64,000 nucleotides of DNA from Tubulanus polymorphus. Taxonomy: Eukaryota > Animalia > Nemertea. Shown here piece by piece: positions 5,301-60,110 of this stretch (its first letter is position 1; every line of letters starts with the position of its first letter). The DNA lies in contig NC_134031.1 in the NCBI RefSeq assembly GCF_964204645.1, forward strand, positions 14,681,807 through 14,745,806, given 5' to 3'. The translations under genes and the position numbers were made by a program. The notes beneath the pieces were generated by a model. It did not search any database, was not told the DNA's origin, and saw only the letters and a program-made list of their open reading frames with translations.

Positions 5301-5750
5301 GACTCGATATGAAAGAGGTGATATAGTAAATTACCCACACGTCAAGTCTCCATCGACCGTCTTAGACACCCGCGAACCCCCTCGCCTCCCGGAACCGCAT
5401 TCCCTACGGTGATATCGGTGTATATGCGTATTGTTGATCCCTGTACTCGAGAAATAGAAGGGCCGGTGTTTATCGCGTGTATACCACTTGAAATCACTTC
5501 ACTCCAGCCCCGTGTGATCGGGTGACGGGGCCGTCCCGATCGTCTGGCGTGCGCGTATTGACATAACAAACCAATTATCAATATCTACGATAAAATTCAA
5601 TCCGACCGCGAACTAGGCGCCCAGCAACCGAACCCCGACACTCCATACTTAATTATGTACTGATAGTTTTAGTTGTGGTTTAAATTAAATTATCTTTTTA
5701 TTTCCGTTTGGTTAATAATGATTAGTAGCAGCGGTGTGGAAGAGAGGTAG

Positions 5751-5975
5751 CACGCAACACAGGCACGCTTGTCTCTAACCCCTGCCCGAACCTTCACGCA
5801 ACACCGGCACACCTGTCTCTAACCCTTGCCCAAACCATCACGCAACACCGGCACACCTGTCTCTAACCCCTGCCCAAACCTTCACGCAACACCGGCACAC
5901 CTGTCTCTAACCCCTGCCCAAACCTTCACGCAACACCGGCACACCTGTCTCTAACCCCTGCCCAAACTTTCACAC
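5751..5975. repeat. 44-bp tandem repeat, ~5 copies
   Basis: Unit CACGCAACACCGGCACACCTGTCTCTAACCCCTGCCCAAACCTT starting at 5751, 5795 and onward. Confidence 0.92.
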
Positions 5976-7145
5976 ACTTCTCCGTCTGCTAAGATTTGAC
6001 TCAAGTGTTTATCATTGAAAATTTACTAATCTATATTTTACCTGTCAGATTTCGCACCCTAGACAGACACTTTATGTTCAATTCAACTAAGTTGCCATCA
6101 AAACCCTTAACGTAACAGCAAAATCAACCATCTGCTGGTGGTACATAGATAGCCCTGTAACTCTAAACCCGGAGTACACTACTGTTGAAATGGCCCCTGC
6201 TCTACACCCAACTCTGACCACAACACAAATCACGTAATCAATTCAACCTTTAAAGACCGCTATTTTGATCCTCAGCTTATTATAAGTTCACTAAAAGCTT
6301 CCTAATTTAAGCTCATTTACGAATCGCTATTGATGACGAATTGCTAATAGATCGTATTTGAATTACTATTCCTCTCCAAATCGACGCTTTCTGTGTTTCT
6401 GGTAATTTTCAGAAATTTAGCCAAGTGAATGGTACACCGATATGCTATCAGCGGCCTTTGTGACGGACAGGAACCGTCGGATACGGTCTAACTCTAACCC
6501 TCTAGGGAAGGGAAGGACTCTTTACCGAATAGGTTGAAGCACAAATTGACTGAACATGTCATCCCTCTTAGAAGCGTTCTCCCGGCGGTAACTATATCAT
6601 TGTCCGCCGAAGACTTTCCTTTGTTTCTCCCTTTTACACAGAATTCAATGCGTTCACAGTCGGTTTCCGGTACGGTGCTATGGTTACTGTTCAACAATGC
6701 TTTCAAATGATTAACAAACGCGTATATAGAAGTGGCTATACGCTCCACGTCGCAGGGGGGTCCCGGCAAAATATCAGACTTTTCAATTTGTTGGTTTGAG
6801 TCATTAAATACCGAGTCAGGAAGTGGATAGTTTTCGCAGCGTATTTTTCGCCGTTAAACGCGTTCTATCAATCTTTCACTTTGACACGAGGCTCCTTTCA
6901 TAAACCAGCGCGTTATAAATTCCCTATTATCCCCGACAAAAAGATAGCATTTAAGAACGAGCGGTTCTTCAATGAATATTTGATTAAGGAACAGATTACA
7001 CGGCTCCGTCACGTTAATGGTATTTCAGACTCGTCGGCTGTTATCGGCTATATCGCGCCGGAAGTACATCTCCAGTTAGATTATCATCACAATAATCTCT
7101 CAACAATTAATTACAATACAAGAATAATCGTCAAGGGTTCAATCG

Positions 7146-7382
7146 TCTCTCTCTCTCTCTCTCTCCCTCCCTCCCTCCCTCCCTCCCTCCCTCCCTCCCT
7201 CCCTCCCTCCCTCCCTCCCTCCCTCCCTCCCTCCCTCCCTCCCTCCCTCCCTCCCTCCCTCCCTCCCTCCCTCCCTCCCTCCCTCCCTCCCTCCCTCCCT
7301 CCCTCCCTCTCTCCCTCTCTCCCTCTCTCCCTCTCTCCCTCTCTCCCTCTCTCCCTCTCTCCCTCTCTCCCTCTCTCCCTCT
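7146..7382. repeat. (CT)n-(CCCT)n-(CCCTCTCT)n compound microsatellite
   Basis: Read directly. Confidence 0.95.
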
Positions 7383-8624
7383 ATCTCATCTCACCTATAT
7401 TCTATCTAGGCCTCATTTTTTCATCGAGGTAATGAACTTTGAAACCCTTGACATTTTTTCTCTGTCCACACAGGTTATGATAATTAAAAGGCTTGTTGGT
7501 TCCGAGGCAGGTGGGTCAAATATTTATATAACTCCAATTCAACGTGCCCTACTTGAAATAGTTATTGTGTAAATCTAACTCGGTGAAAATTTGCGGTATC
7601 GTCGTATGTTTCAGCGAGTCCGTGAATTACAAGTGTCGCAACCGGGCGTGTAGTATATCGTTTCAATCGACTCAGCTGTATGAAGACAGGACACTACCAC
7701 CCGTATCTCATTCGTTTGTACAACAAATATTTCAAATATATTTCAATTTTCAACGTTGGTTTCTATCCAAACAATTTCCGAGAGAGAGTGAGAGGGAGGA
7801 AGGGAGAGCGGGGAACGGTGAGAGAGTACACTTGTACTTTTAACTGAAGCGTTCATTTATTTCTGCAGGTGACACAACAGTTTAAGAAAAATGATAAATA
7901 TGTGTCGAAACTTTATCCACAAAAAAATTTCCATCGTGAAACAACAAGATTTTCAATCAATTTCATGTAGAAATTACTGAAAATGATTTCCAAGTAAAAA
8001 GTTTTATATAACAGTTTTTTAAAGAGATTTGATATTTCGTTTTCCTCACACCTCAGAATATTGTAAATCTTGAGTCGAATGGCCCGATCATTTCGTAGAT
8101 CACGTTGACCTCAAGGAGCAAACAGCAAATCGTAAATGTGCATTAAGTCATGGAGAATTATGTCACTTGTCCGGACTGATTGCTAGATCCCCTAGAAACC
8201 TGACACTTACTCGCAAGTCCGAGAGTTTTAATTCAAATGGCAGTTCAAGAAGAAGGGTGCCGGGTATATGTATGCATGTATTATGATGTAAGCCCCTAGG
8301 CCGTTTAGGGGGAGGGAGGGGAGTGGAGGATAGTTTAATGAAGCGAAGATAACGGTTCAATTATTACGGAGATTAATGAAGGATTATTGTGTTCGACTAT
8401 ATCGGTTGCCAACAGGGACATATTTCATATGACCGCAGATACCTGTGTGTCATTGATAGGAACTATACGCGGTCAATTCGGATGGCAGACGATGGTCAGA
8501 AATATGCTAATTTGAATTGTAACATGTCTTAAGGGGCAATTGCCAGGCGGCAACAATAATAATACAATTATATTGCTAATACAACCAAATCGATGCAGTG
8601 ATTCTTGTGATTCTGCCTATTGCA

Positions 8625-9000
8625 TTTGAATCCATTTTCACAGTTGTGTATGTAGGTTTAATTTGACCCTGGACCTAGATTTACAATAATTGTGCGCGTT
8701 TAATCTGACTCCGAACTCAGTTCCACAGTGTTTTGAGCGCATTTTATTTGTCTCTGAACCCAGTTTCATAGTTATGTGCATTCATTTCGTATCTGAACTC
8801 AGTTCCACAGTTATGTGCATTTCATTTGTCTCAGAACCCAGTTTCACAGTTGTGAGCATGTATCTGAACCCAGTTCCACAGTTGTGTGGGTTTGATTTGA
8901 CTCCGCACTCAGTTCCACAGTTGTGCGCGTTTAATTTTTCTCTGGACCCAGTTCCTGGGGTGTATGGGTTTAATTTGACTATAAACCCAGTTCCATAGTT
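8625..9000. repeat. Diverged 39-bp tandem repeat, reverse orientation of the 569-787 family
   Basis: Units resemble TGGACCCAGTTCCACAGTTGTGCGCGTTTAATTTGTCTC. Confidence 0.8.
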
Positions 9001-9201
9001 AACCTCGATCAAGAAAAGTCGTTTCAAAATTATCATAGAAATTATCAAATCCCAAATTCATTGGAGTAACCCTTTCTCGGAGTCACCCTTGATGATATCG
9101 ATGACTCAAAAATTCAGTAGATATCTTTTGTTTCACTTTCGGTCTTGATGAATTCAAGTAGTTTTTCACGCTTGACAAGTATTTCCGTTATTCTAGCTCA
9201 A

Positions 9202-9394
<193 letters not shown>

Positions 9395-19575: not shown

Positions 19576-20547
19576 ATGCAGCACTATCGTCAAGAGACCC
19601 AGCAATTATACCATATCGAGGGCCGCTCACACGCCGATACGGAGCCGACCTTCCGCAGCCGGGCGTCAACTTGGCATTCGACTGAACGTTTGGAACAGGC
19701 AAGAAGAAATGTAGATATGAGATTGAAACGGCAACACTTGCACCAAGCGGATTTGCTGTCGGTTCCGTGCAACGGAAATTCGATGTCGTGTTTGAGAAAT
19801 TCAACTGCGATTTCTAGGAGTCACTCGGTTCTGGATGACACCCTCCGCTCACAGAAACACAATATTGGACGTGTAGTCCCGTCGGCGTCCGAACTGCACA
19901 GGTCACAGAAATCGCCGCCGTACATTTTCGACGAAAACGAACGCCGACGTTTGCAAAAGGAACTTGAACGTTTAGAATCGCAGGTGGCGCTACAATCGTC
20001 TTCTAGTCCGGAGAACTCACCCGTGACGCCGTTCGGTATAAAGTCTCCACTTCCGCCGATCGGAACGAAGACAACGCAGGAGAAAATGCGCCACCTACCG
20101 GAAATATATGTGCACAGTCCGACTGTAAATAAAGTCAGGTCAGTCAGGTCTCAAGCGTCCGATGGCATCGATTCACCGGTTACTCTGGGTGATATATCAG
20201 AATCGCCCCTAATAGAGCGACGTAAGCAACACCGGAGAAATGGGAATAACAATTCAAAGAAATTCGAGAATCGTCAAGAAAATGTGAATTACACCGCTAA
20301 AGAAAAGCAGCACGAAGCACATGTGAAACTTCCCGCACCCGGAAACGTATCGCCTGACACTGAAACTGCAGCGAAAATACACGCCAGAAAAATGAACAAA
20401 CGACAAGACGATCGTAAACTGTTGGCATTTCTGCGGTCGGCACAGGCTCGCAGACGACCGGCTGAGTGTCACCATAGCGAAGACCAGATAATGTTCGTTT
20501 GTTGCGATTACGTACGATTTTACAATTTTATCGAAAATGAGTTCTGA
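19576..20547 (+). CDS. Uncharacterised 323-aa, largely disordered S/R/E/K-rich protein (single coding exon)
   Basis: 972-bp non-repetitive ORF, higher GC than its flanks, A at -3 of the ATG, candidate upstream acceptor at 19438; no domain recognised. Confidence 0.75.
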   Translation: MQHYRQETQQLYHIEGRSHADTEPTFRSRASTWHSTERLEQARRNVDMRLKRQHLHQADLLSVPCNGNSMSCLRNSTAISRSHSVLDDTLRSQKHNIGRVVPSASELHRSQKSPPYIFDENERRRLQKELERLESQVALQSSSSPENSPVTPFGIKSPLPPIGTKTTQEKMRHLPEIYVHSPTVNKVRSVRSQASDGIDSPVTLGDISESPLIERRKQHRRNGNNNSKKFENRQENVNYTAKEKQHEAHVKLPAPGNVSPDTETAAKIHARKMNKRQDDRKLLAFLRSAQARRRPAECHHSEDQIMFVCCDYVRFYNFIENEF

Positions 20548-21899: not shown

Positions 21900-22350
21900 A
21901 ATTCCCCAATTCCGCTGTTCAACGATTCCACAGGTACCATGGTTCCACGATTCCACGGTTTCACAGTTCCGCAGTTCACGAATTCTACAATTTTACAGTT
22001 CCGCAATTCCACGCTTCAAGAACTCCACAATTCCACAATTCCACAGTTCCACACTTCAAGATCTCCACAATTCCACAGTTCCACGCTTCAAGAACTCCAC
22101 GATTCCACGGTTACACAGTTCCACAATTCCACGCTTCAAGAACTCCACGATTCCACAGTTACACAATTCCACAGTTCCACGCTTCAAGAACTCCACAATT
22201 CCACAATTCCACAGTTCCACACTTCAAGATCTCCACAATTCCACAGTTCCACGCTTCAAGAACTCCACGATTCCACGGTTACACAGTTCCACAATTCCAC
22301 GCTTCAAGAACTCCACGATTCCACAATTCCACAATTCCACAGTTCCACGG
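21900..22350. repeat. 8-bp-monomer satellite (TTCCACAG/AA/GA, TTCAAGAA) with ~168-bp higher-order duplication
   Basis: Read directly; its translation repeats with a 56-aa period. Confidence 0.88.
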
Positions 22351-22459
22351 TTCAGTTCAACAATGCCCTCTAGAGTTGGACAGAAAAATCGTATTTTAAG
22401 GATTCCTAATAATTGACGTTACGCACGCGTTACAAACGTTACAGAATATAATTGAACAA

Positions 22460-26507: not shown

Positions 26508-27245
26508 ATGATATCTCTGATAAAACAGTTGAAAGAAAGGAAACAATTCATCGAAGCGACCCTTAAGACGCGCGAAGAAGACTCACAGAGGGCGCTACAA
26601 CAGGATGGTGGGATTCCACCAGTGTTTAACAAACGCTTTTTCTCGTCAAAAGGTGCCGCTGTAGTCACACCGGAAGCGCGTAGAATAATGGCGGAGAACC
26701 GAAAGCGCATTACGTCCGATAAGGTGGCGCCACTCTCTAAGTCTGAGATGAGCGCGATGCGGTGCGTAGTTGACGGACTGCGTATGATCCACCGTGACGT
26801 CGATTACGTCAAGGATTGCGTCACTCATTGTTTAACTTATGAAAAACTTCCTCCGTTTACGTACGTGACGTGCATGCAGCACGAGACGTGCCTGTCGTGT
26901 TTCTATCTGATTTGTGGCGTCGTTGAAGTGACGTACGACGCGTCTTGCGACTCGGGTGTTTCCGTACACGAACCGAACATTATCTACACTCATTCGACCG
27001 GCGAATATCTCGGTCTGATATCGGCTAAAGAGGGCGTACCAGATCTAGCCCCTCCCTCGTCGGTCTACACGAAACAGCCCTGCGAATGTTTACGAATCGA
27101 TCGAATAAAATTCCACAAACTACTGCTGAAACGACGGGAGCAAGACTGCATCGAGAAAATGGAATTCCTCAACAGTAACAACTGTATTCTAAACGTCCTC
27201 AGCGCCGATGAGAAACAGGCGTTGTTACAGAGTTTACGCAAAATC
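26508..27245 (+). CDS. Cyclic nucleotide-binding domain-containing protein (CNBD-like), coding exon 1
   Basis: AAAATG start with an upstream in-frame stop; CNB-like CFYLICGVVEV...GEYLG...CECLRIDRIKF; phase-0 donor ATC|gtaagt. Confidence 0.85.
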
Positions 27246-27349
27246 GTAAGTGAAAGAAAAAAATTAATCATTTCATTGTCAAATCGTTAGACCAGTCAGG
27301 CCACAGTCGAATAGGGCACTTTCTCAACCACCCATCACAGATGAATTTC

Positions 27350-31220: not shown

Positions 31221-34200
31221 CTCCTCTCTGAAAAGGAGTTTAGGAGAAACGTATTTACTACAGTATGCAATGTTCAATTTCTACCAATGATTTATTCTGG
31301 TTTGTGGTCTTCATAAAGTATCGCTTTCGATCAATCGCAATTTTTGCACTGGTCGCTTTAATACACCATTTGCAGTTTTAACTGCAACGGAACGGAACAA
31401 GTCATCTCAACCTGGATAGACCTCAACGACACGTCCCATTTTCCATTCGGTCTTCTTCACGTTATCTTCAGCAACCAATACAACATCACCAACTTTCAAG
31501 TTCTGCTGAACTACAGTCCACTTCCTGAATCTATTTAGTTCGGCCAAATATTCCCGATACCATCTAGTCCAGAATGACTTTTCGAGTCTTTGGCAGTACA
31601 GCCACCTTTTACCAAGACTAGTACTTGGTAAACTCACAAACGACTTGGCGTTATCTGACCACATGGTACACGGTTTCCCTCGGCGATTAATCATACGTTC
31701 GAATGACTTAAGAAACTCATCAGCCGTCATGTCCTCTAATAGTTCCAGATGGTCAGCTCTGATGGTCATACAAGTGAATATGTAGGAATTACTGGTGTCC
31801 AGTCTTATCATACAATGGTCCGGCATAATCACATCCAACATGTGTGAATATAATAATTTAATATAATAATTTATTTTCGTAAACCGGTTACGAGGTATCC
31901 AGTGCAAGCCAACAGGCTGTACATAAAATTAAGGCGCTGGAACCTTGTGCAGAGTGCAGGGGAATGTGCAGTGATACTTATAAATAATGCTATTAATAAT
32001 CTTAATGTAAACCAATAATCGACAAGTAATCAATGCCGCTAGTAACTCTAACTCTGGAATAGTTCTTTTTTCTTTCATCGGGCTTACCCTGGTTTTAGAA
32101 CACAACAGAGCAACCTTGAACTCATCATTTGGATTTTCACTATGGATATACACACACGCAGCATATGCCTTTTCACTGGCGTCACCAAATCCGTGCAGGG
32201 TCTATTTTACATCATGTTTTGTCTCCATGAGTACATATCGGTCAAGTCTTAGATCATCAAGGTTTTTCACATCAGCTTTCCACTGACACCACTCCTCATG
32301 TAGTTCGACAGGTAACGAATCATCCCATCCACAGACGATAGTCCACGATCGCTGGAATAACATTTTTCGCAGTGATCAAAAACGGTGAGAGTCATATTGT
32401 TCATAGCATACCATTGGGTCATAAATCCGATGTAGTTGTTTTAGAACGCTATGACGAGTTTCAATCAGTAAATCTTCCATCTTATCACAAAAGGAGAACA
32501 TCAACTGGTCATCGCTCGGTATAAACATGGTACCTAGTGGCTTTAAACCAGATTCAACATCGGACAACATTTTGACGTGTTGAGTCGCGAGGTCTTCTTT
32601 CTTCAATTGACCGAGAGCTTCAGGTTTATTAGAACTAAACTTCTTCCACGGGAATCCACCGGATTCCAGAACTTCCTTTAACTGTAAGGCTAAGTCGGAA
32701 GCTTCCGAGATTTCATCTTCACCAGATAGGACATCATCGACATAAGTATTGCTTAATATTTCCTCACAGGATTTTGGGTATTGTGACTGTAAATTCTCAG
32801 CATGTTGTCGCACGACCATGATGCTACTGAACGAAATCTTAACAACATGCCACATAGGTTTGGTTGCAACTGGACCGGGAAGCAGTGTTGCATTTATAGA
32901 AACACCTGGGCCTTTTGCAGAGCCATCAAACACGGGCCGCACCTTCGTAGTGTAACCGGCTGGTTGTTGTATCGGCAGGCTGGCTGGGGAACTAGCATTT
33001 ACACCAGCGGTACAGGATTCCATCGTTCAGGAACAACAAGGCAGTTAAACCTTATAGGTGCAATCTTTATTGCATCCCGGAATGAGAATGATTATCATAA
33101 CTTTACATTGTCTTTATATACAGAATCATGAGTTTGATGTGAGAACAAGGTGTCAGACAAGTTGTAGACATCAGGACTCAGAAACTAACACCTAGTGACA
33201 TATTTTGAGAGACATTAATTAATTATTGATTAGCACTGACTAGAGCTAATTACTATGAATATATGAACATATTGAGTAATGTCACATGTTGATTACGATT
33301 AAAGCACATATTAATACTATATTCATAAGTTATTTACATTATTAATATTATTATTATTGTTAAGCATTTCCATGTAGTAAGAGATATGAAATATTATGAA
33401 CCATTCGATATGAAATTGTAGATATATAAAACACGTTCCCAAATGTTTTGATACTTTCTCAGTTTGTATCATAAATATTGCCAATTTCTGGTCCTTAAGT
33501 CCTAAAAAATGATAAATTTACAGCGTAAAATCGTACAAACGTGTCAATTATACTTCTAAACGCTTTATTTGCGCAACAGTTTATGAATTGAGCGTGGGCC
33601 ATAGAGCGCTATAACCGCCTCTGATCTCGACTTTCAATTATAATTACGTAAGCTATTCATGAACAAAATGCGGCCGGCGCACAATAGAAACTTCGCTCTA
33701 TGTATTATTTCATGATTATAGAATATGCAACTTATATCAGAAAGACAGTAGTAGCTTTATTTGGTCTGAGTACGGGATGGTGCAGCAGATACCAGACTGT
33801 TCTCATTAAAAATAGAAATAAATTCTCGCAAGCACGAATTCATTTTTATTTCTTACTCAAATTTTCAACCTTTAATCTGAAACAAGACTTATCTAATTAC
33901 TCTAATAATTCCATATATATGAATAACATATAAATGAATATCATTTAAATGAAAGCCATGTATATGAATATTATATATAACATATTAATGAAAAGCAAAG
34001 TGCTTTCTCTCAGGGACCTATCATCACCAGTTTTCTTCAGAATATAATTCTACCTGAATATCAATTTACTATAAAAATAATTAATGGACGGGAGATTTGA
34101 TATTTCAAGAATAGCTTGTTTTTGTAAGGGCATCACCGTATTTATCCTCCAGTGTCTCCAGAATGTCTTCGTAACTGGGATCTTTTAGAGCGGCAATAAT

Positions 34201-40542: not shown

Positions 40543-41582
40543 CCGAGTGTGGAGTTAACTCTGACCTACCCAACTGTGTTACTGGATCCTGAGTTGATTT
40601 TAACCGACTTTTGAGCAACTGACCACAGATGATCTAAAATTTAACTGGGTTGAAAATAGAATTCAATGGTTTTGAAGTTTTTTGCACGTGATTACGAGGA
40701 CAACAGTTTCTGTTTGTTTTCTGAGAAATTCCTTTTTTTCTTCATTTAAAAGCATAAGTGCGGACCGGAAGTTGACGCTCGGGATATACACAATCGCTTT
40801 AAAGCGGACAGACTAAGTATCGCCCGAGCCCGATGGAAATTCGCATCTGATAGCGTCGATTATAACATAATGTTACTGGTTAGTAGCTTCTACACTCTCT
40901 TTATATGGGATTAAAAGAAAAATCCGTTTCTGAATTTTATGATAGAATTTGGAAAATTTGTTTTAAAATCTCTTTTTCGAAAATATTTATTCTTTGATCT
41001 TCTATCTAGCAATCGAACAATGTGATGTGTTCTATTGATACCGGATCCATTTTGAGAAATGCTATAGAAGGAGCAGCAAACATGGCCAAAAGGGTGCAGT
41101 ACCGTAAAGATAATACAAAACCGCCAATAGCGTAAGCATAGGCCCCCCCCCCATCAATGTCGGAAACACAGTCGAGACTCGAGTCCAAAAATAGCCGTAA
41201 ACCTGTAAAAACTAGATTAGCTATAGAAGTTAATTTGACCTTTAATAGACTGGTCTTAAATCTAAGACATGGCGATGTCCAATTGGGCCCTCGACCCAGT
41301 TCGAAAGCTGTGTGAGTTCGAATCGAACGTATCCATCAGTCATTCGAGTGAAGCCTCGCGTTGAAGATCATACAAACCCTGTCCAGGCCTTGATTCTATA
41401 CATGTGTTAGTCTTATCAGAGGAATGTTGCATTGATAATTTCACTGTATGTTTAGATGGCAGACTCCCATTCACGAAGAAAGAGATCGCGCGAAACAGAA
41501 ACTCGCTTTTAATAGATACAGAATGGAAATATTGAGGCGTCGTCTGCGCAGAAACAATGACGATAAACTGCCGATGAATACT

Positions 41583-41907
41583 ACAATCTGATTGGTCGAG
41601 GGACTCCATCCTGCAATCTGATTGGACCAGTCCATCCTGCAATATGGTTAGTCGAGAGACTCCATCATGCAATCTGATTAACCCAAGAACTGTATCCTGC
41701 AATCTGATTGGACCAGTCCATCCTGCATGGTTAGTCGAGAGACTCCATCATACTATCGGATTAACCCAAGAACTGTATCCTGCAATCTCATTGGACCAGT
41801 CCATCCTGCATGGTTAGTCGAGAGACTCCATCATGCTATCGGATTGACCCAAGAACTGTATCCTGCAATCTGATTGGTCGAGGAATTGTATCATGCACAA
41901 TGATTGG
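41583..41907. repeat. Tandem repeat of CTGCAATCTGATTGG-containing units (~80-bp higher-order unit)
   Basis: Read directly. Confidence 0.85.
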
Positions 41908-42072
41908 CAAACAACTAAACCCCAAAAAGCATCAGTTTAACACATGTTTTTTTTATATATTGATGAATTTATTACATAAAATAAAATGTAAAATTGTGTA
42001 TTATATGTGTCCAGTTTTTATAAATCGGAAAATCTTTGTTTTATCAAAATATCAGTTACAAGTTTGCTATAC

Positions 42073-42603
42073 CAGGGCCGGCGGAAGGTATAAACTAATT
42101 GGACTATTAGTGTCCCGTGCACCGAAAATTCTCGAGGTCAAAATTTGCCGGTTCTATAGCCACACATCAAGAAATTGTCATGGCCGCCGTTAGCATTGTG
42201 GCGATTTGTTGGAGAGATACTGGAAGGTAGTTAAAATTAGAAGGTTGATACACTGGATTTAGAAATCTATAGACACAAAACCGGCTTTTTAATATCGTGA
42301 TGAAACAATGTACAAGATTGGGATATGCAAACTTGAAAATATCGTAAACAGGATTATCTTGAGCTGCTATATTATGGAATTACTACATGTTTATAATATC
42401 AGAAATATACCAATAAAACATGTGAAACTATGAAACACATTTACTATCAATATTAACGATGAGAAATAATTGTAAATTACTCAGACTTACTGAATGATAC
42501 CACCAATGAACAAAGTTTTAAGTTTAAGAAATTTTGAAACATCATCGGCAAAATTATTGGTCCGGCCATGGCCGTACTGGCCGTACCGGTTCCGCCGGCC
42601 CTG
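42073..42603. mobile_element. CAG-terminal non-autonomous DNA transposon with 5-bp TSD
   Basis: 14-bp TIR CAGGGCCGGCGGAA / TTCCGCCGGCCCTG, with TATAC on both sides. Confidence 0.85.
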
Positions 42604-42710
42604 TATACATGATATAACTCATTTCAGTGTGCGCCGTATTTATGATATCAGATATTTCGTGAACGTTTATGATAATCTCATCTTAAACGTGTCTCTAATA
42701 GCGGAAGTGT

Positions 42711-43163
42711 CTACCAACCACCCCTCCTGCCGCCGCCACTTCGCCCTCCACTCCGACCTCCACTCCTGCCGCCACTTCGACCTCCACTCCTGCCGCCACT
42801 TCGGCCTCCACTCCTGCCGCCACTTCGGCCTCCGCTCCTGCCACCACGGCTGCTGCCGTGACCCGCGCGATCAGTCGCCGTCGATGACGCTTTAGAATCG
42901 GATCCACCGCCATCAGCGCCACCTGACGATTGACTTGAGGCATCTTTACTCCCGTGACCGGCTGATCCGCTTGTGGATTTACTCCCGTCGGACGAGCTAC
43001 TGTGAGTTGCTGAGCCCGTTATCGCACGTTTACGTCTACTTTCGGCCAAAACGGCAGCGCCATCTATCGGTTTTTGTTCACTTTCCCCTCCGTCAATAAG
43101 CAGACTGTAACACACATGCGCAGTGAGAGCCGTCAGGCAAATTACTACCACGAAATTCCTCAT
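42711..43163 (-). CDS. Secreted Gly/Ser/Arg-rich prepropeptide (150 aa), antimicrobial-peptide-like architecture
   Basis: Hydrophobic N-terminus (aa 1-20), acidic pro-region, RRKR furin site, (GGRS)9-GGGRRGGW tail; ATG directly after acceptor tttcag; repeat variation is synonymous in this frame. Confidence 0.88.
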   Translation of the reverse strand: MRNFVVVICLTALTAHVCYSLLIDGGESEQKPIDGAAVLAESRRKRAITGSATHSSSSDGSKSTSGSAGHGSKDASSQSSGGADGGGSDSKASSTATDRAGHGSSRGGRSGGRSGGRSGGRSGGRSGGRSGGRSGGRSGGRSGGGRRGGW

Positions 43164-44073
43164 CTGAAACCATTCAAATTAAATCCAGACGATAAAATAA
43201 AGCATTATTCATATTTTTGAATAAATTGAGTTTGATAACAGGACCCGGTTCCACGGTTCCGAATTAATTTTGACTCATTTTGTTAACTCGCGACTAGGGA
43301 AGAGGATCCAGTTCGACAATTCCGAGTTGATATTTTAATTAAAGCATTGGGAATAAACTAATTTCATCTCGGAGTGAACTAACATACAACTGTGTAACCG
43401 GATCCTATTTTGTTGGATTCTGTTCATGCAAAATAGGATCCAGTTCCACAGTTGCGAATGAGAATTAACTGTTAACTCACGGTAGATCGGTAAGATATAA
43501 CGTTAAGTTCCAGAGGTTGTGAGGTAGAGGGGATTTAATCAACTTTTGAATTGAGCAGATCCGAATACTTTTTGTGTCAAAGACTCGACCGTTGTTGTTA
43601 TCGTATATTATTGGTCTGTGAAAATCGGCCCCTAAAATAGTTAAAACTCAAAGTGAGTCTGATTTTGGTTACTTCGTGTTTTCAATGAGGACATCAAAAT
43701 TAACCATTTTAGCTTGTTCACGGAAGCATGCAGAGGCCCTGATTGAGTTGTAGAAATTACAGTGGTTCCATATCGCACCCTGAACTACTGAAGAACACAC
43801 TGGAATCACTGTTACAATTATTGGGTTACGCTGTTCATCGTCAACTACACTGAAACCCGCGATCATTTTGTACCAAAACAATCAGATTAAAAGTAACGTT
43901 CTTGTACATCGATGAGCAAATGGACTGCAAACAATGTCCGGATTAGACTAGATTCGAGATCAGACTAAAATCCGGATTAAGCCGATCCAGATTAAGTGGA
44001 TTCGACTGTGTACTTGTCTCATATTATTATTTCTGCAAATAAATCAAATCGAATCATAAAACATTAAACATAC

Positions 44074-44370
44074 CTTAAACAGATTGAATAAAGCTCCGTT
44101 CGGCTGATGTATATATTTCACTCGCTATCTGTAATGTTGTGTGTCTGGTCCGGACTGTATTTCACTCGCTGATCCGGAGAATGTGTTTACTACAATCAGA
44201 GTCTAATCGAGTTTATATAAGCCACTAGAACATCCCGTTTCCTTACAGGATGATTCACAGGTTTCCCCAGTTTAGGCTGCATTCCCCTCCGGACTTCCAG
44301 GAAATGTTTTGGCCGTTTTGTTGTTGTTGTTGCTTGTAACAGGAATTTCTAATGTCGAATATAGATAAGC
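44074..44370 (-). promoter_or_regulatory. TATA promoter and 5'UTR exon of the GGRS prepropeptide gene, with kB-like sites
   Basis: TATATAAA 44219-44212, Inr-like TAGT near 44191, donor AAG|GTATGT at 44074; GGGATGTTCT, GGGGAAACCT, GGGGAATGCA and AGAAATTCCT upstream. Confidence 0.65.
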
Positions 44371-44940
44371 TGTGTACATACATGCACACTGTCACGCCAT
44401 AAAAGCAGTAAAATATAAATCGCACAATTACAGGATCGAAAAAGATTTTAAAACATCGAAACTACTAAAGTTTGTTTAAAACTCGAATTTTCGGTTTTAT
44501 GCTAAAACCATTTTCAAGAGTAACTAAAAGTATGGCATACACAGTATATAAATCAAGCAAGAACGACACACACTATTGCACATAAAAACTAGGTGATAAT
44601 GACCAGAGAGGAAATGTATAGGGTCAAACGTTTATTATGGGGGGAGAAACCAAGGTTACCATCACACCGATGGATTTACATTTTACCTACAGAAGTACTT
44701 TCAACGCTTATTAGCGGCATTACTATCACGTCATATATCGACTTGCGAAATACTCCCTTGTTCGGTAAAACGTTCGCTGATTGGTCCATTTAACATGAAT
44801 TACCGCAGAAGTCTAATGTCGTTTGTTACAAGCACTGTGATCGGCCCGACCTTATTCTGGTCCACTGGTAATGACTCCAACGACTCGTGAGGTCAAAGGG
44901 TTTGGGACCAGCTTTAGCGTAATGGGTTCGAATCCCTTGA

Positions 44941-45219
44941 CAGGTGAAGATCTAGGATTTTCCAGGATTTCCAGGATTTCCCAGGAGGGGGTTCATGAAA
45001 AATGTTTATGTTAAACTGCTGACTAAAATCTCTAATGATAGGGGCCTATACGGCATATTGTTTGGCCAAACATAAGATAATATGGTACCGATTATCTGGT
45101 ACTGTCCGCCCACTTTGTCTTGAGTACAACCTTCAAGAAAACGATTGAAATTTTTTTGGTAGCTGAGAGGGGGGGGGGGGGTTCACGACCCCTGAAACCA
45201 CCGTCTGGATCCGCGCCTG
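44941..45219. mobile_element. Degenerate CAGG-terminal MITE
   Basis: CAGGTGAAGATCTAG ... CTGGATCCGCGCCTG; no clear TSD. Confidence 0.55.
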
Positions 45220-46447
45220 TTGCATTAGATGTTTTGTATTATCGTCAATCGAGTTCCAACCACTGTATATATGTCAAAGAAAAACGAAAAATACACAAAT
45301 TGGTATTTATGATTAGATTAGATTAGATTAAACATTTACTTCATGACTATGAAAGTATAAGGAGTTTCATACAAGAAACATGTATATATAACAAAATATC
45401 AATATATACAATAAGAAATAAATAGATAGTATCGCAGTTATTCAAAGGAATCAATAATTATGTGTTTTTCATTTACAATAGATAGGCTGTAAAGAGAATC
45501 AATTAATATATGTATGCAAAGTCCTCGACCAGATCGCCATCTACCGGAATTCACTGGGTTTTGTGGCATATAGTAAACAACGCGACTTCATCGATGCAAT
45601 AGAAAACCTTTATCTACTGGAATGATATTTGCTAATTATGATAATGATCTTTATCTAAATTGTTTGCTGGTCATCCCCCAGAATATTTTGAAAGACCGGT
45701 CTCTTTTTCACCCATTCTGACCGATTTTAGACACGGTTTGATCATATTAGGCCCTACGTATATTCATTCAAAGTGTACCTTGTTATTTGAAAAACTGAAA
45801 ATGAATTATACGAAGGAATGGATGTTGATTACTTTCACGACTAAATGTAATCAAAGTTTGTATACATGTGATCTAATCCGTTTGAATGACAAGTAAATAC
45901 TCTTCACTCCACTGAACTACTCCAGTCACTCCACTAGATGCTCCAACTACTACGTTTTCATGGGCTTTCGGTTCGATTCAATTTTCCATATATTGTACTG
46001 TATGAAATAGATGCATTTTGCCATAATGATCTGCTTTAGTGTTTGTTGAGGCACCCGCTCAGACACGAAACCTCGTGACAAGTACCACTTCGAACCACAA
46101 GTGGAATCGTTGGAAATATCGTAACGAAAAATCTAACAAAAATATCGCAAAGTCTCTAAACTGACTCAAAAAATTTTGGAAGTAACTCATGGAAAATCAA
46201 CAAAATTAAATTTCACGTCGCCGCTTCATATAGTTCGGATAAAGTCGGATAGGCGGCGCTGTAACCGTGAGTCACTAAAACGAGGTACTGTCTGTGTGTT
46301 TACTACAAACGTCAAAGCGGCTGCATCTGTACAATAACGCACGGTACGGCTGATTCTGATTGGATACGTACAGATTGACTATAAGAGGGCGCTGCTATCT
46401 GCTAGCGATGTAACCGGTCGGATGTTGGACGATCATTGTCGCGTGGG

Positions 46448-50644: not shown

Positions 50645-50860
50645 ACAGTTCTCCGGTTCCGGTTCCACAGATCTGTATCCGGTTCCACAGTTCAGGACCC
50701 GGTTCTACAGTGCTATACCCAGATCCACAGTAAGTCATGGATCCAGTTCCACAGTTTTGTATCCAGTTCCGCAGTTCTGTATCCAGTTCCACAGTTCTGG
50801 ATACAGTTCCGCAGTTTTGTATCCAGTTCCACAGTTCTGTATTCAGTTCCACAGTTCTGT
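50645..50860. repeat. 20-bp minisatellite (ATCCAGTTCCACAGTTCTGT)n
   Basis: The unit matches the Harbinger-like MITE terminus. Confidence 0.88.
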
Positions 50861-59051: not shown

Positions 59052-59711
59052 TTGGCTTGTATTAACAAATTTCTATTTCAATACGTTTTTGAAGTTATTC
59101 GTTTCCCGAGCGGCGAATTCTCCTGTCGAGTTCTCATCTCGTCGCTATATGTCATCAGTTTTTTTCAGCCCGTTAGCCCTCGTCCTCGTGTCCCTAGAAC
59201 GGATGACCGTGATACAGTTCCCGTTTCAGGGCCCGAGATTCTGGACCCGTAAAACAGTCACCATAATCATCGCTGCTACGATCGTTCTATTATTTTGCTT
59301 GTCTATGTATCTAACCCGAGGTGAAACGTACATGTTTAAAATTGGTTGTGTCATTAGTAATACTGGTTACCCACTAGTCGCTACAATTCTGACATTCGTT
59401 TTCAGCGCCTTTCTACCGACGTTCGTTATATCGCGTTCGACTCTATTCATTCTAATTTCGCTATTCCGCAGAACAAAATCTTCATCAACCTCCGCGGCGT
59501 CGGTACAAGTATCTATGATGGTAACCGCCAACTGTCCAACTATATGGTGATATTATGGGCTAGGCCTGATTTCGCTTTCGAAGTTACTCATAGCTTGAAT
59601 CTTTGGAATTTTTGTGTGAATTTCTACCTGTATGTTCTGACGGGGAAAGATATTCGACGAACATTGAAAAACATATGTTCTTTTAAAAATGTTCTTTTGA
59701 AAATTACTTAA
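59052..59711 (+). pseudogene. Class A (peptide-receptor-like) GPCR pseudogene, roughly TM2/3 to TM7
   Basis: SCRVL..LALVLVSLERMTVIQFP (TM3), FLPTFVI (TM5), NFCVNFYLYVLTGKDIRRTL (TM7/H8); frameshift at T7 59159-65, deletion and frameshift in TM6 near 59533, no TM1 found. Confidence 0.85.
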
Positions 59712-59719
59712 TGTCGCGC

Positions 59720-60110
59720 AACTGTGGCGGTAACTAGATCCAGAACTGTGGAACTAGGTCCAGAACTGTGGAACTAGGTCCAGAACTGTGGAAATGGGTC
59801 CGGGAATGTTGAACTAGTTCTAGAAATGTGCAATTCGTTCAAGAACTGTAAAAATGGGTTCAAACTGTAGAAATAACTGGGTCATGGTGGAACTGGGTTC
59901 AAAACTGTAAAACTGGATACAGAACGGTGGAACTGGATACAGAACGGTGGAACTGGGATCAGAACGGTGGAACTGGGCCCTGAACTATGGAACTAGGTCT
60001 AGAAAGGTGCAATTCGGTAAAGAACTGTGGAACTAGTTTCGAAACTGTGGAAATAACTGTGCGTCATGGTGGAACTGGGTCCAGAACCACTGTGGAACTA
60101 AATCCAGAAT
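59720..60110. repeat. 20-bp minisatellite (CCAGAACTGTGGAACTRGGT)n with ~180-bp higher-order duplication
   Basis: Reverse complement of the 50645-50860 family. Confidence 0.88.

Follow-up and report, generated by a model that had tools for sequence, protein, structure and literature searches.

Positions 42711 to 43163 of the window (the whole 64,000-nucleotide stretch of DNA that was analysed, from the ribbon worm Tubulanus polymorphus) hold the coding sequence of a gene that is genuine, transcribed and spliced. By our searches of protein libraries and of the worm's own genome, its 150-residue product is an orphan without detectable relatives, and it is predicted to be a secreted-type precursor whose mature part carries a (GGRS)9 array. 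The copies of that array differ from one another only synonymously, which supports constraint at the level of the protein. Reading function from composition, we tentatively propose a secreted, polyanion-binding polycation that would condense mucus, tube or granule material.

A spliced, transcribed gene on the minus strand

The sequence-only reading had placed an open reading frame at 42711-43163 without naming a strand. The frame is present at exactly these coordinates and lies on the minus strand, where it runs from ATG to TAG over 150 codons plus the stop; on the plus strand, the same register contains stops throughout 42711-43163. We mapped public sequencing runs on window positions 41500-46000, among them two runs of one 2014 sample (X5 and X6) and a run of 2024 (X2). 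Contigs of 1223 nt (X5) and 1190 nt (X6) read from 44143 to 44074 and then continue from 43163 to 42014 and 42043, respectively. The 910 nt that they skip have plus-strand ends CT..AC, equivalent to GT..AG on the minus strand, so the minus strand is the transcribed one and the gene has two exons. The splice donor reads AAG/GTATGT and the acceptor tttcag/ATG, and the start codon is thus formed by the first three bases of exon 2. As no ATG occurs in 44200..44074, the exon 1 region scanned, the reading frame opens at the first AUG of the mRNA.

Summed contig depth in X2 is 18,000-114,000 over exon 2 and about 80-100 over the intron, a contrast of more than 200-fold that identifies X2 as RNA. The transcript is apparently abundant, although the depth of contigs reflects expression poorly and cannot rank genes. 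Together, the spliced contigs of the two 2014 runs and the X2 depth over exon 2 bear out transcription of what had been only a candidate. The gene is single-copy, with exon 1 contributing 5'UTR and exon 2 the coding sequence and 3'UTR (Table 1).

Both ends of the transcript are approximate. A second small contig carries exon 1 out to 44170, which is the limit of RNA support, and the position near 44185 is inferred from the TATA box (TATATAAA) at 44219-44212, which is real and correctly placed. At the 3' end, the contigs stop at 42014 and 42043, with an AATAAA at 41973-41968. A cluster of NF-kB-like sites upstream of the TATA box was not supported: in the promoter at 44180-44480, GGGRNNYYCC-type consensi gave no exact kB site and one that is off by a single base, which is not above chance given an expectation of 0.62 per 300 nt.

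Within exon 1, a 13-nt sequence (AGCGAGTGAAATA, minus strand) occurs twice as a direct repeat, at 44170-44158 and at 44126-44114, and the two copies delimit a unit of 44 nt. In the 2014 sample, one RNA contig of 74 nt has CACACAACATTACAGAT immediately in front of 44170, and there is a break in the main contig at 44143. These observations suggest that the 2014 individual has an extra copy of the 44-nt unit in its 5'UTR, a small VNTR.

Table 1. Features of the gene and of its predicted product, in window coordinates.
Feature	Position	Strand	Basis
TATA box (TATATAAA)	44212..44219	-	read in sequence; some 30 nt upstream of the 5'-most RNA support
Exon 1, 5'UTR only, no ATG	44074..44185	-	RNA contigs cover 44143..44074 and 44170..44114 (X5/X6)
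Intron, 910 nt, GT..AG	43164..44073	-	joint 43163 to 44074 in one contig each of X5 and X6
Exon 2, whole CDS and about 700 nt of 3'UTR	42014..43163	-	contigs colinear over 43163..42014 and 43163..42043
CDS	42711..43163	-	150 codons and TAG; first AUG of the mRNA, A at -3
N-terminus of signal-peptide type, residues 1-20	43104..43163	-	hydropathy and inspection of -3/-1
Acidic spacer or pro-piece, residues 21-42, net -4	43038..43103	-	sequence
R-R-K-R, residues 43-46	43026..43037	-	furin-type convertase consensus; predicted cut
Ser/Gly/Ala/Thr/Asp-rich half, residues 47-105, net -1	42849..43025	-	two AGHGS; single copy in genome
R-(GGRS)9-GGGRRGGW, residues 106-150	42714..42848	-	12 Arg in 45 residues
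24-nt DNA tandem under the (GGRS) array	42748..42847	-	4.2 copies, 94% identity

Layout and composition of the precursor

The translation matches the layout described by the sequence-only reading: a signal-type N-terminus, an acidic piece, RRKR, a Cys-free Ser/Gly/Asp half with two AGHGS motifs, and (GGRS)9-GGGRRGGW. Residues 1-20 begin with M-R-N, continue through a 12-residue hydrophobic core (FVVVICLTALTA) and end in HVCYS, with small residues at -3/-1 (C-Y-S). R-X-K/R-R is the consensus of furin-type proprotein convertases. Both the signal peptide and the furin cut are predictions, read by inspection of the sequence (hydropathy, -3/-1). The stretch F4-I23 has a mean Kyte-Doolittle value of 2.3 (hand sum of standard values) and is long and hydrophobic enough that it may serve as an uncleaved signal anchor. 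Even with such an anchor, residues 47-150 would face the lumen and would be released at RRKR.

The mature part, residues 47-150, lacks Cys, and apart from I48 and W150 none of its residues is hydrophobic. With 16 basic and 5 acidic residues, its net charge is +11. Residues 47-105 are dominated by Ser (20) and Gly (12), followed by Ala (8), Thr (5), Asp (5), His (3) and Lys (3), and hold the AGHGS motifs at 68-72 and 100-104; in the tail, Arg recurs once per fourth position. The mature chain is thus a polycation with a near-neutral head. The label 'block polyampholyte' was considered and rejected, as charge segregation along the mature chain is no different from that of shuffles. The ESM Atlas model of the exact sequence has a pLDDT of 0.36 and a pTM of 0.14, which suggests a disordered protein.

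Several modifications are conceivable from the sequence. The dibasic RR at 146-147, which follows Gly, could be trimmed to leave an amidated C-terminus, and the Ser/Thr/Gly-rich half is possibly glycosylated or phosphorylated. Trypsin-like proteases would dice the array into SGGR.

Evidence for protein-level constraint on the repeat

At the DNA level, a period of 12 nt, the length of one GGRS, matches at only 72%, versus 94% identity for a period of 24 nt (42748-42847). The 24-nt unit is AGG AGT GGA GGC CGA AGT GGC GGC. The array thus arose by recent duplication of a two-GGRS block, and the alternation of codons is largely inherited from that block. Nevertheless, the four full 24-nt copies have accumulated six differences among them, and all six are third-position synonymous. 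The two halves of the unit add three further differences, again all synonymous (AGG/CGA and GGA/GGC). A random substitution in the unit would be synonymous with P 0.28-0.31; the probability of six out of six is about 5e-4, and that of nine out of nine about 1e-5. Individuals also differ at 42801 (codon 121 position 3), and this polymorphism brings the synonymous differences to ten.

The statement of the sequence-only reading that repeat codons vary only synonymously is consequently correct in its count, nine of nine, and needs qualifying in that most of the alternation stems from the duplicated 24-nt block. What remains supports constraint at the protein level. More than 20 other tandem arrays occur in the window, so repeat formation is commonplace here and the special feature of this array is its synonymous-only pattern.

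We also compared the 2014 sample with the assembly. The coding sequences differ by three substitutions, of which two change the protein (E29Q, G85S) and one is synonymous and lies in the array. Indels are absent, and both individuals have the same number of repeats. The 3'UTR differs at four sites and by a 1-nt deletion.

The protein has no detectable relatives

The sequence-only reading had called the peptide undescribed, and neither family nor protein matches emerged from Pfam, phmmer, two word searches or ESM Atlas neighbours. A Pfam scan of the protein returned no family, its only match being a meaningless one at E=8. With residues 1-104 as query, a word-index protein search gave nothing at E<=1, and an exhaustive phmmer search of 1.84 billion cluster representatives gave zero matches at E<=0.001. 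A word-index search with residues 95-150 returned only two spurious open reading frames on simple repeats. The ESM Atlas contains an identical sequence, so the protein had been predicted earlier, and offers no feature neighbours for it; the structure 'neighbours' that it lists were set aside as meaningless, with TM below 0.45 on a model of pLDDT 0.36. An exact look-up of the 150-residue protein in one protein library found no record. These queries are short and of low complexity, hard for any search, and the ribbon-worm proteome coverage of the libraries is uncertain.

Within the 268-Mb genome, searches for paralogues of residues 1-53 and, separately, of residues 47-105 recovered only the gene itself, which answers in the negative the suggestion that the signal and pro region might reveal a family. 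A search of the same genome with the whole protein gave 166 matches, all to the tail only. A cluster of second genes was considered among them and rejected: each of the 19 loci inspected is a (GGRE)n or (VGRS)n microsatellite in which several frames are open, not a gene. The genome abounds in (GGRE)n microsatellites (AGGG-type), often beside (RE)n/(GA)n; with three frames open, they yield misleading protein matches for any Gly/Arg-rich query.

A nemertean neuropeptide survey drew on the 2014 T. polymorphus transcriptome, the source of which was the anterior three quarters of one animal (PMC4986456). We sought the motif in the supplements of that survey, which includes T. polymorphus, and it is absent from them.

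Surroundings of the gene in the window

The intron carries minisatellite or TE-like motifs of the GGATCCAGTTCCACAGTT type. A GGATCCAGTTCCACAGTT-like core is common to minisatellites and single copies at 565-774, 8739-9001, 21944-22354, 50658-50860 and 59732-60052, and to the intron at 43230-43460; they look like a single family of dispersed elements prone to tandem amplification in this genome. In the 3'UTR, positions 42527-42606 are GC-rich, with GGCCGG motifs that are nearly palindromic and a 9-nt tandem (TGGCCGTAC). Parts of unrelated contigs from other runs (X7, X5) match this segment, and a comparable motif, CCGCCGGCCCTG, is found again at about 42075, so that 42527-42606 is probably a fragment of a dispersed repeat. 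Just past the 3' end of the gene, 41608-41877 is an 83-nt tandem repeat (3.2 copies, 94% identity) that yields two similar open reading frames, starting MVSRETPSC..., at 41644 and 41810.

On the other side of the gene and outside it, 44671-45128 is an expressed repeat family: depth reaches 5,700-9,300 in the 2024 RNA run, with only short partial matches carrying 4-7 mismatches to longer contigs. Farther away, an intronless ATG open reading frame of 323 residues, rich in Ser, Arg and Gln, lies at 19576-20547 (+) and has no Pfam match. A rhodopsin-type GPCR exon lies at 59089-59550 (+), with 7tm_1 at E=4e-7 just under the Pfam cutoff and Srg above its cutoff. The window also holds a DUF5641 retroelement fragment at 31407-31907 (-) (E=2.5e-20) and a weak cNMP-binding-like open reading frame at 26508-27290 (+) (E=0.002, below cutoff).

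A candidate polycation for condensing secreted material

If the predicted layout is right, the hydrophobic N-terminus would route the protein into the secretory pathway, where a furin-type convertase would cut after R-R-K-R(46). The cut would liberate a disordered chain that is about 104 residues long, has no Cys and is almost devoid of hydrophobic residues. Its tail would behave as a flexible polycation, binding polyanions electrostatically and through Arg hydrogen bonds, and its likeliest partners would be the animal's own acid mucopolysaccharides together with acidic and phosphorylated secreted proteins. Binding would condense these partners in secretory granules and/or cross-link them after release, as mucus, tube lining or adhesive, and binding to microbial surfaces would arise from the same chemistry. 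Since acid glycans and acidic proteins of its own are the most abundant polyanions of a mucus-secreting, tube-lining worm, we rank a role in mucus, tube or granules slightly ahead of that of a classical antimicrobial peptide.

Several observations speak for the condensing role: spliced expression, the first AUG, the TATA box, the stable repeat number, the synonymous-only changes, the composition, disorder and orphan status. A chain with Arg at every fourth residue on a Gly/Ser background and no hydrophobic face could not adopt amphipathic membrane-lytic structures, and its evident capacity would be multivalent polyanion binding. There are precedents for such chemistry. In the cement granules of sabellariids, basic Gly-rich repeat proteins form coacervates with sulfated polysaccharide and a polyphosphoserine protein (PMC12621633), and a secreted Gly-rich protein of tick cement phase-separates into adhesive (PMC11772090). 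Other features count against a material role. The protein has neither the Tyr/DOPA nor the abundant His of known cement polycations, nor aromatics for cation-pi self-coacervation, and its sequence of signal peptide, acidic spacer, RXKR and cationic repeats is the classical layout of an antimicrobial precursor too. One Arg per four residues is a modest charge density, so purely electrostatic binding would be weakened at seawater ionic strength, a point that counts against the material and the defence readings alike. A bolder form of the proposal, which we think unlikely, is an extracellular RGG/RS 'phase-separation grammar', in which an aromatic-free Arg-Gly-Ser polycation would coacervate acidic secreted polymers into mucus-tube or adhesive material.

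The strongest competitor, possible but to our minds rather doubtful, is a host-defence peptide. Through its cationic chain, or the Arg-rich tail of that chain, the protein would attach to LPS, teichoic acids or nucleic acids and would kill or agglutinate microbes in the manner of protamine, as a constitutive component of mucus. The layout, with its signal peptide, acidic spacer, RRKR and Gly-rich cationic repeats, fits that of glycine-rich antimicrobial peptide (AMP) precursors (PMC11772090), and armadillidins are built of G-rich tetrapeptide repeats in which the fourth residue can be R or S (PMC7017220). Non-amphipathic, Arg/Ser-rich chains can also serve: antimicrobial activity is reported for the arginine-rich domain of HBV core and for protamine (PMC3681751, PMC7352774). 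Orphan status combined with apparently high expression is typical of lineage-specific AMPs. The composition fits less well, as the Gly-rich AMPs compared are rich in F/Y/H (PMC7017220, PMC11772090) and the 104 mature residues include only two hydrophobic ones, of which one is aromatic; this argues against a membrane-lytic peptide. The pro-piece, with its net charge of -4, is too weak to mask or neutralise a mature part of +11. Arg makes up only 27% of the tail, and protamine is far richer in it. The promoter is not enriched in kB sites, and there is no paralogous family sharing a signal/pro region, unlike in many AMP families. The sequence-only reading had offered two functions, an antimicrobial peptide or an extracellular coacervating or nucleic-acid-binding component of mucus or adhesive. 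The second of these fits the composition at least as well as the first, which loses ground in its membrane-lytic form.

That the gene has no specific adapted function seems to us quite unlikely. It would then be a young, possibly de novo or fast-evolving orphan with abundant mRNA and a low-complexity secreted product, its repeat a by-product of minisatellite-prone DNA. The failure to find relatives or paralogues, the more than 20 tandem arrays of the window, the recent origin implied by 94% identity among the array copies, and the fact that two of the three coding differences between individuals are non-synonymous (E29Q, G85S) would all suit such a history. It accounts poorly for the nine of nine synonymous array differences and for a repeat number shared by two individuals, and it sits badly with very high transcript depth and a canonical anatomy (TATA box, clean splice sites, a first AUG with A at -3, signal peptide, convertase site). 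Far less probable again is a precursor of many very small signalling peptides of SGGR or SGG type, or of an amidated C-terminal product. Every 4-residue unit is perfectly conserved, the RR near the C-terminus with Gly before it could yield a Gly-derived amide, and nemertean peptidomics records monobasic cleavage at Arg with a second basic residue 3-6 positions upstream (PMC8557429). The units have single Arg separators, though, and lack dibasic flanks; the period of four puts neighbouring Arg at P5/P9. Convertases favour P4/P6 for the second basic residue. Peptides cut from the array would be no more than 3-4 residues of G/S, the neuropeptide survey supplements lack the motif, and very high expression is atypical of a neuropeptide.

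Defence peptides, cements and glues all belong to the broad and known kind of secreted, Gly-rich cationic repeat proteins; what is new here is an orphan precursor of secreted type, and the support from RNA, from splicing and for constraint on the protein shows that its gene is real. The described examples that we compared all rely on aromatic or His residues, which makes the (GGRS)9 chain an unusually clean natural polycation. If it cross-links mucus or tube, it would offer a minimal model of extracellular coacervation, and secreted RGG/RS coacervation, if true, would amount to a new, genetically simple two-component biomaterial from a phylum whose secretions are molecularly almost unknown. 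Should the protein be antimicrobial, a phylum without characterised antimicrobial peptides in the literature searched would gain a defence peptide of the non-amphipathic, protamine-like sort.

Comparison with known systems

The ribbon-worm precursor shares its generic layout of signal peptide, pro-peptide and Gly-rich repeats, read by inspection, with the glycine-rich AMPs (class per PMC11772090). The arthropod members of that class (armadillidins, ctenidins, acanthoscurrins, serrulin) likewise have a signal peptide and cationic, Gly-rich short tandem repeats and are lineage-restricted (PMC7017220, PMC11772090); the repeats of armadillidins are GGGX tetrapeptides, where X may be R or S (PMC7017220). 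They differ in being peptides of 5-10 kDa rich in F/Y/H, whereas the ribbon-worm mature region has one Ile and a terminal Trp. Its repeats lack the aromatic, hydrophobic or His residues of the GGGF, GGY and GGH types, and its three His all lie outside the array. Sequence similarity is absent: residues 1-104 showed none to armadillidins, conserved signal peptide included, among 1.84e9 representatives or by word search. The ribbon-worm protein also has an extra 59-residue Ser/Thr/Gly half.

Sabellariid cement proteins (Pc-1/2/4/5, Sa-1/2) and the Gly-rich proteins of tick cement resemble it in being secreted, basic and disordered with Gly-rich repeats, and they condense with polyanions or phase-separate into material (PMC12621633, PMC11772090). 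There is no homology to them, and the charge of the ribbon-worm protein comes from Arg, not Lys/His, with no Tyr/DOPA. Basic and Gly-rich as it is, it falls outside the sabellariid type, with 0 Tyr and 3 His in its mature part. It also stands apart from two other secretory classes. Multi-copy neuropeptide precursors are a poor match for an array with single-Arg separators and the next Arg at P5. Xylosylation takes place at Ser-Gly in acidic surroundings, and a serglycin-like core does not fit either, as the Ser-Gly of the array is preceded by Arg and not by acidic residues.

The intracellular RGG/GAR and RS domains (fibrillarin/nucleolin-type GAR, SR proteins) have the same Arg spaced by Gly/Ser on a flexible chain, which suits polyanion binding and phase separation. 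The ribbon-worm protein differs from them in its secretory N-terminus and convertase site, and has no RRM and no F/Y beside RGG. It does not belong with the RGG/GAR RNA-binding proteins: it has no Pfam domain, its N-terminus is of secretory type, and the first AUG starts the signal sequence. Secretion as predicted would keep it on the other side of the membrane from the Arg methyltransferases and SR kinases of the cytosol. Protamine and the arginine-rich domain of HBV core resemble it in chemistry, being hydrophilic, Arg/Ser-rich, non-amphipathic and polyanion-binding (PMC3681751, PMC7352774). Their task is nuclear or viral packaging of nucleic acid, carried out with denser Arg clusters, whereas the ribbon-worm chain is Gly-diluted and of secretory type.
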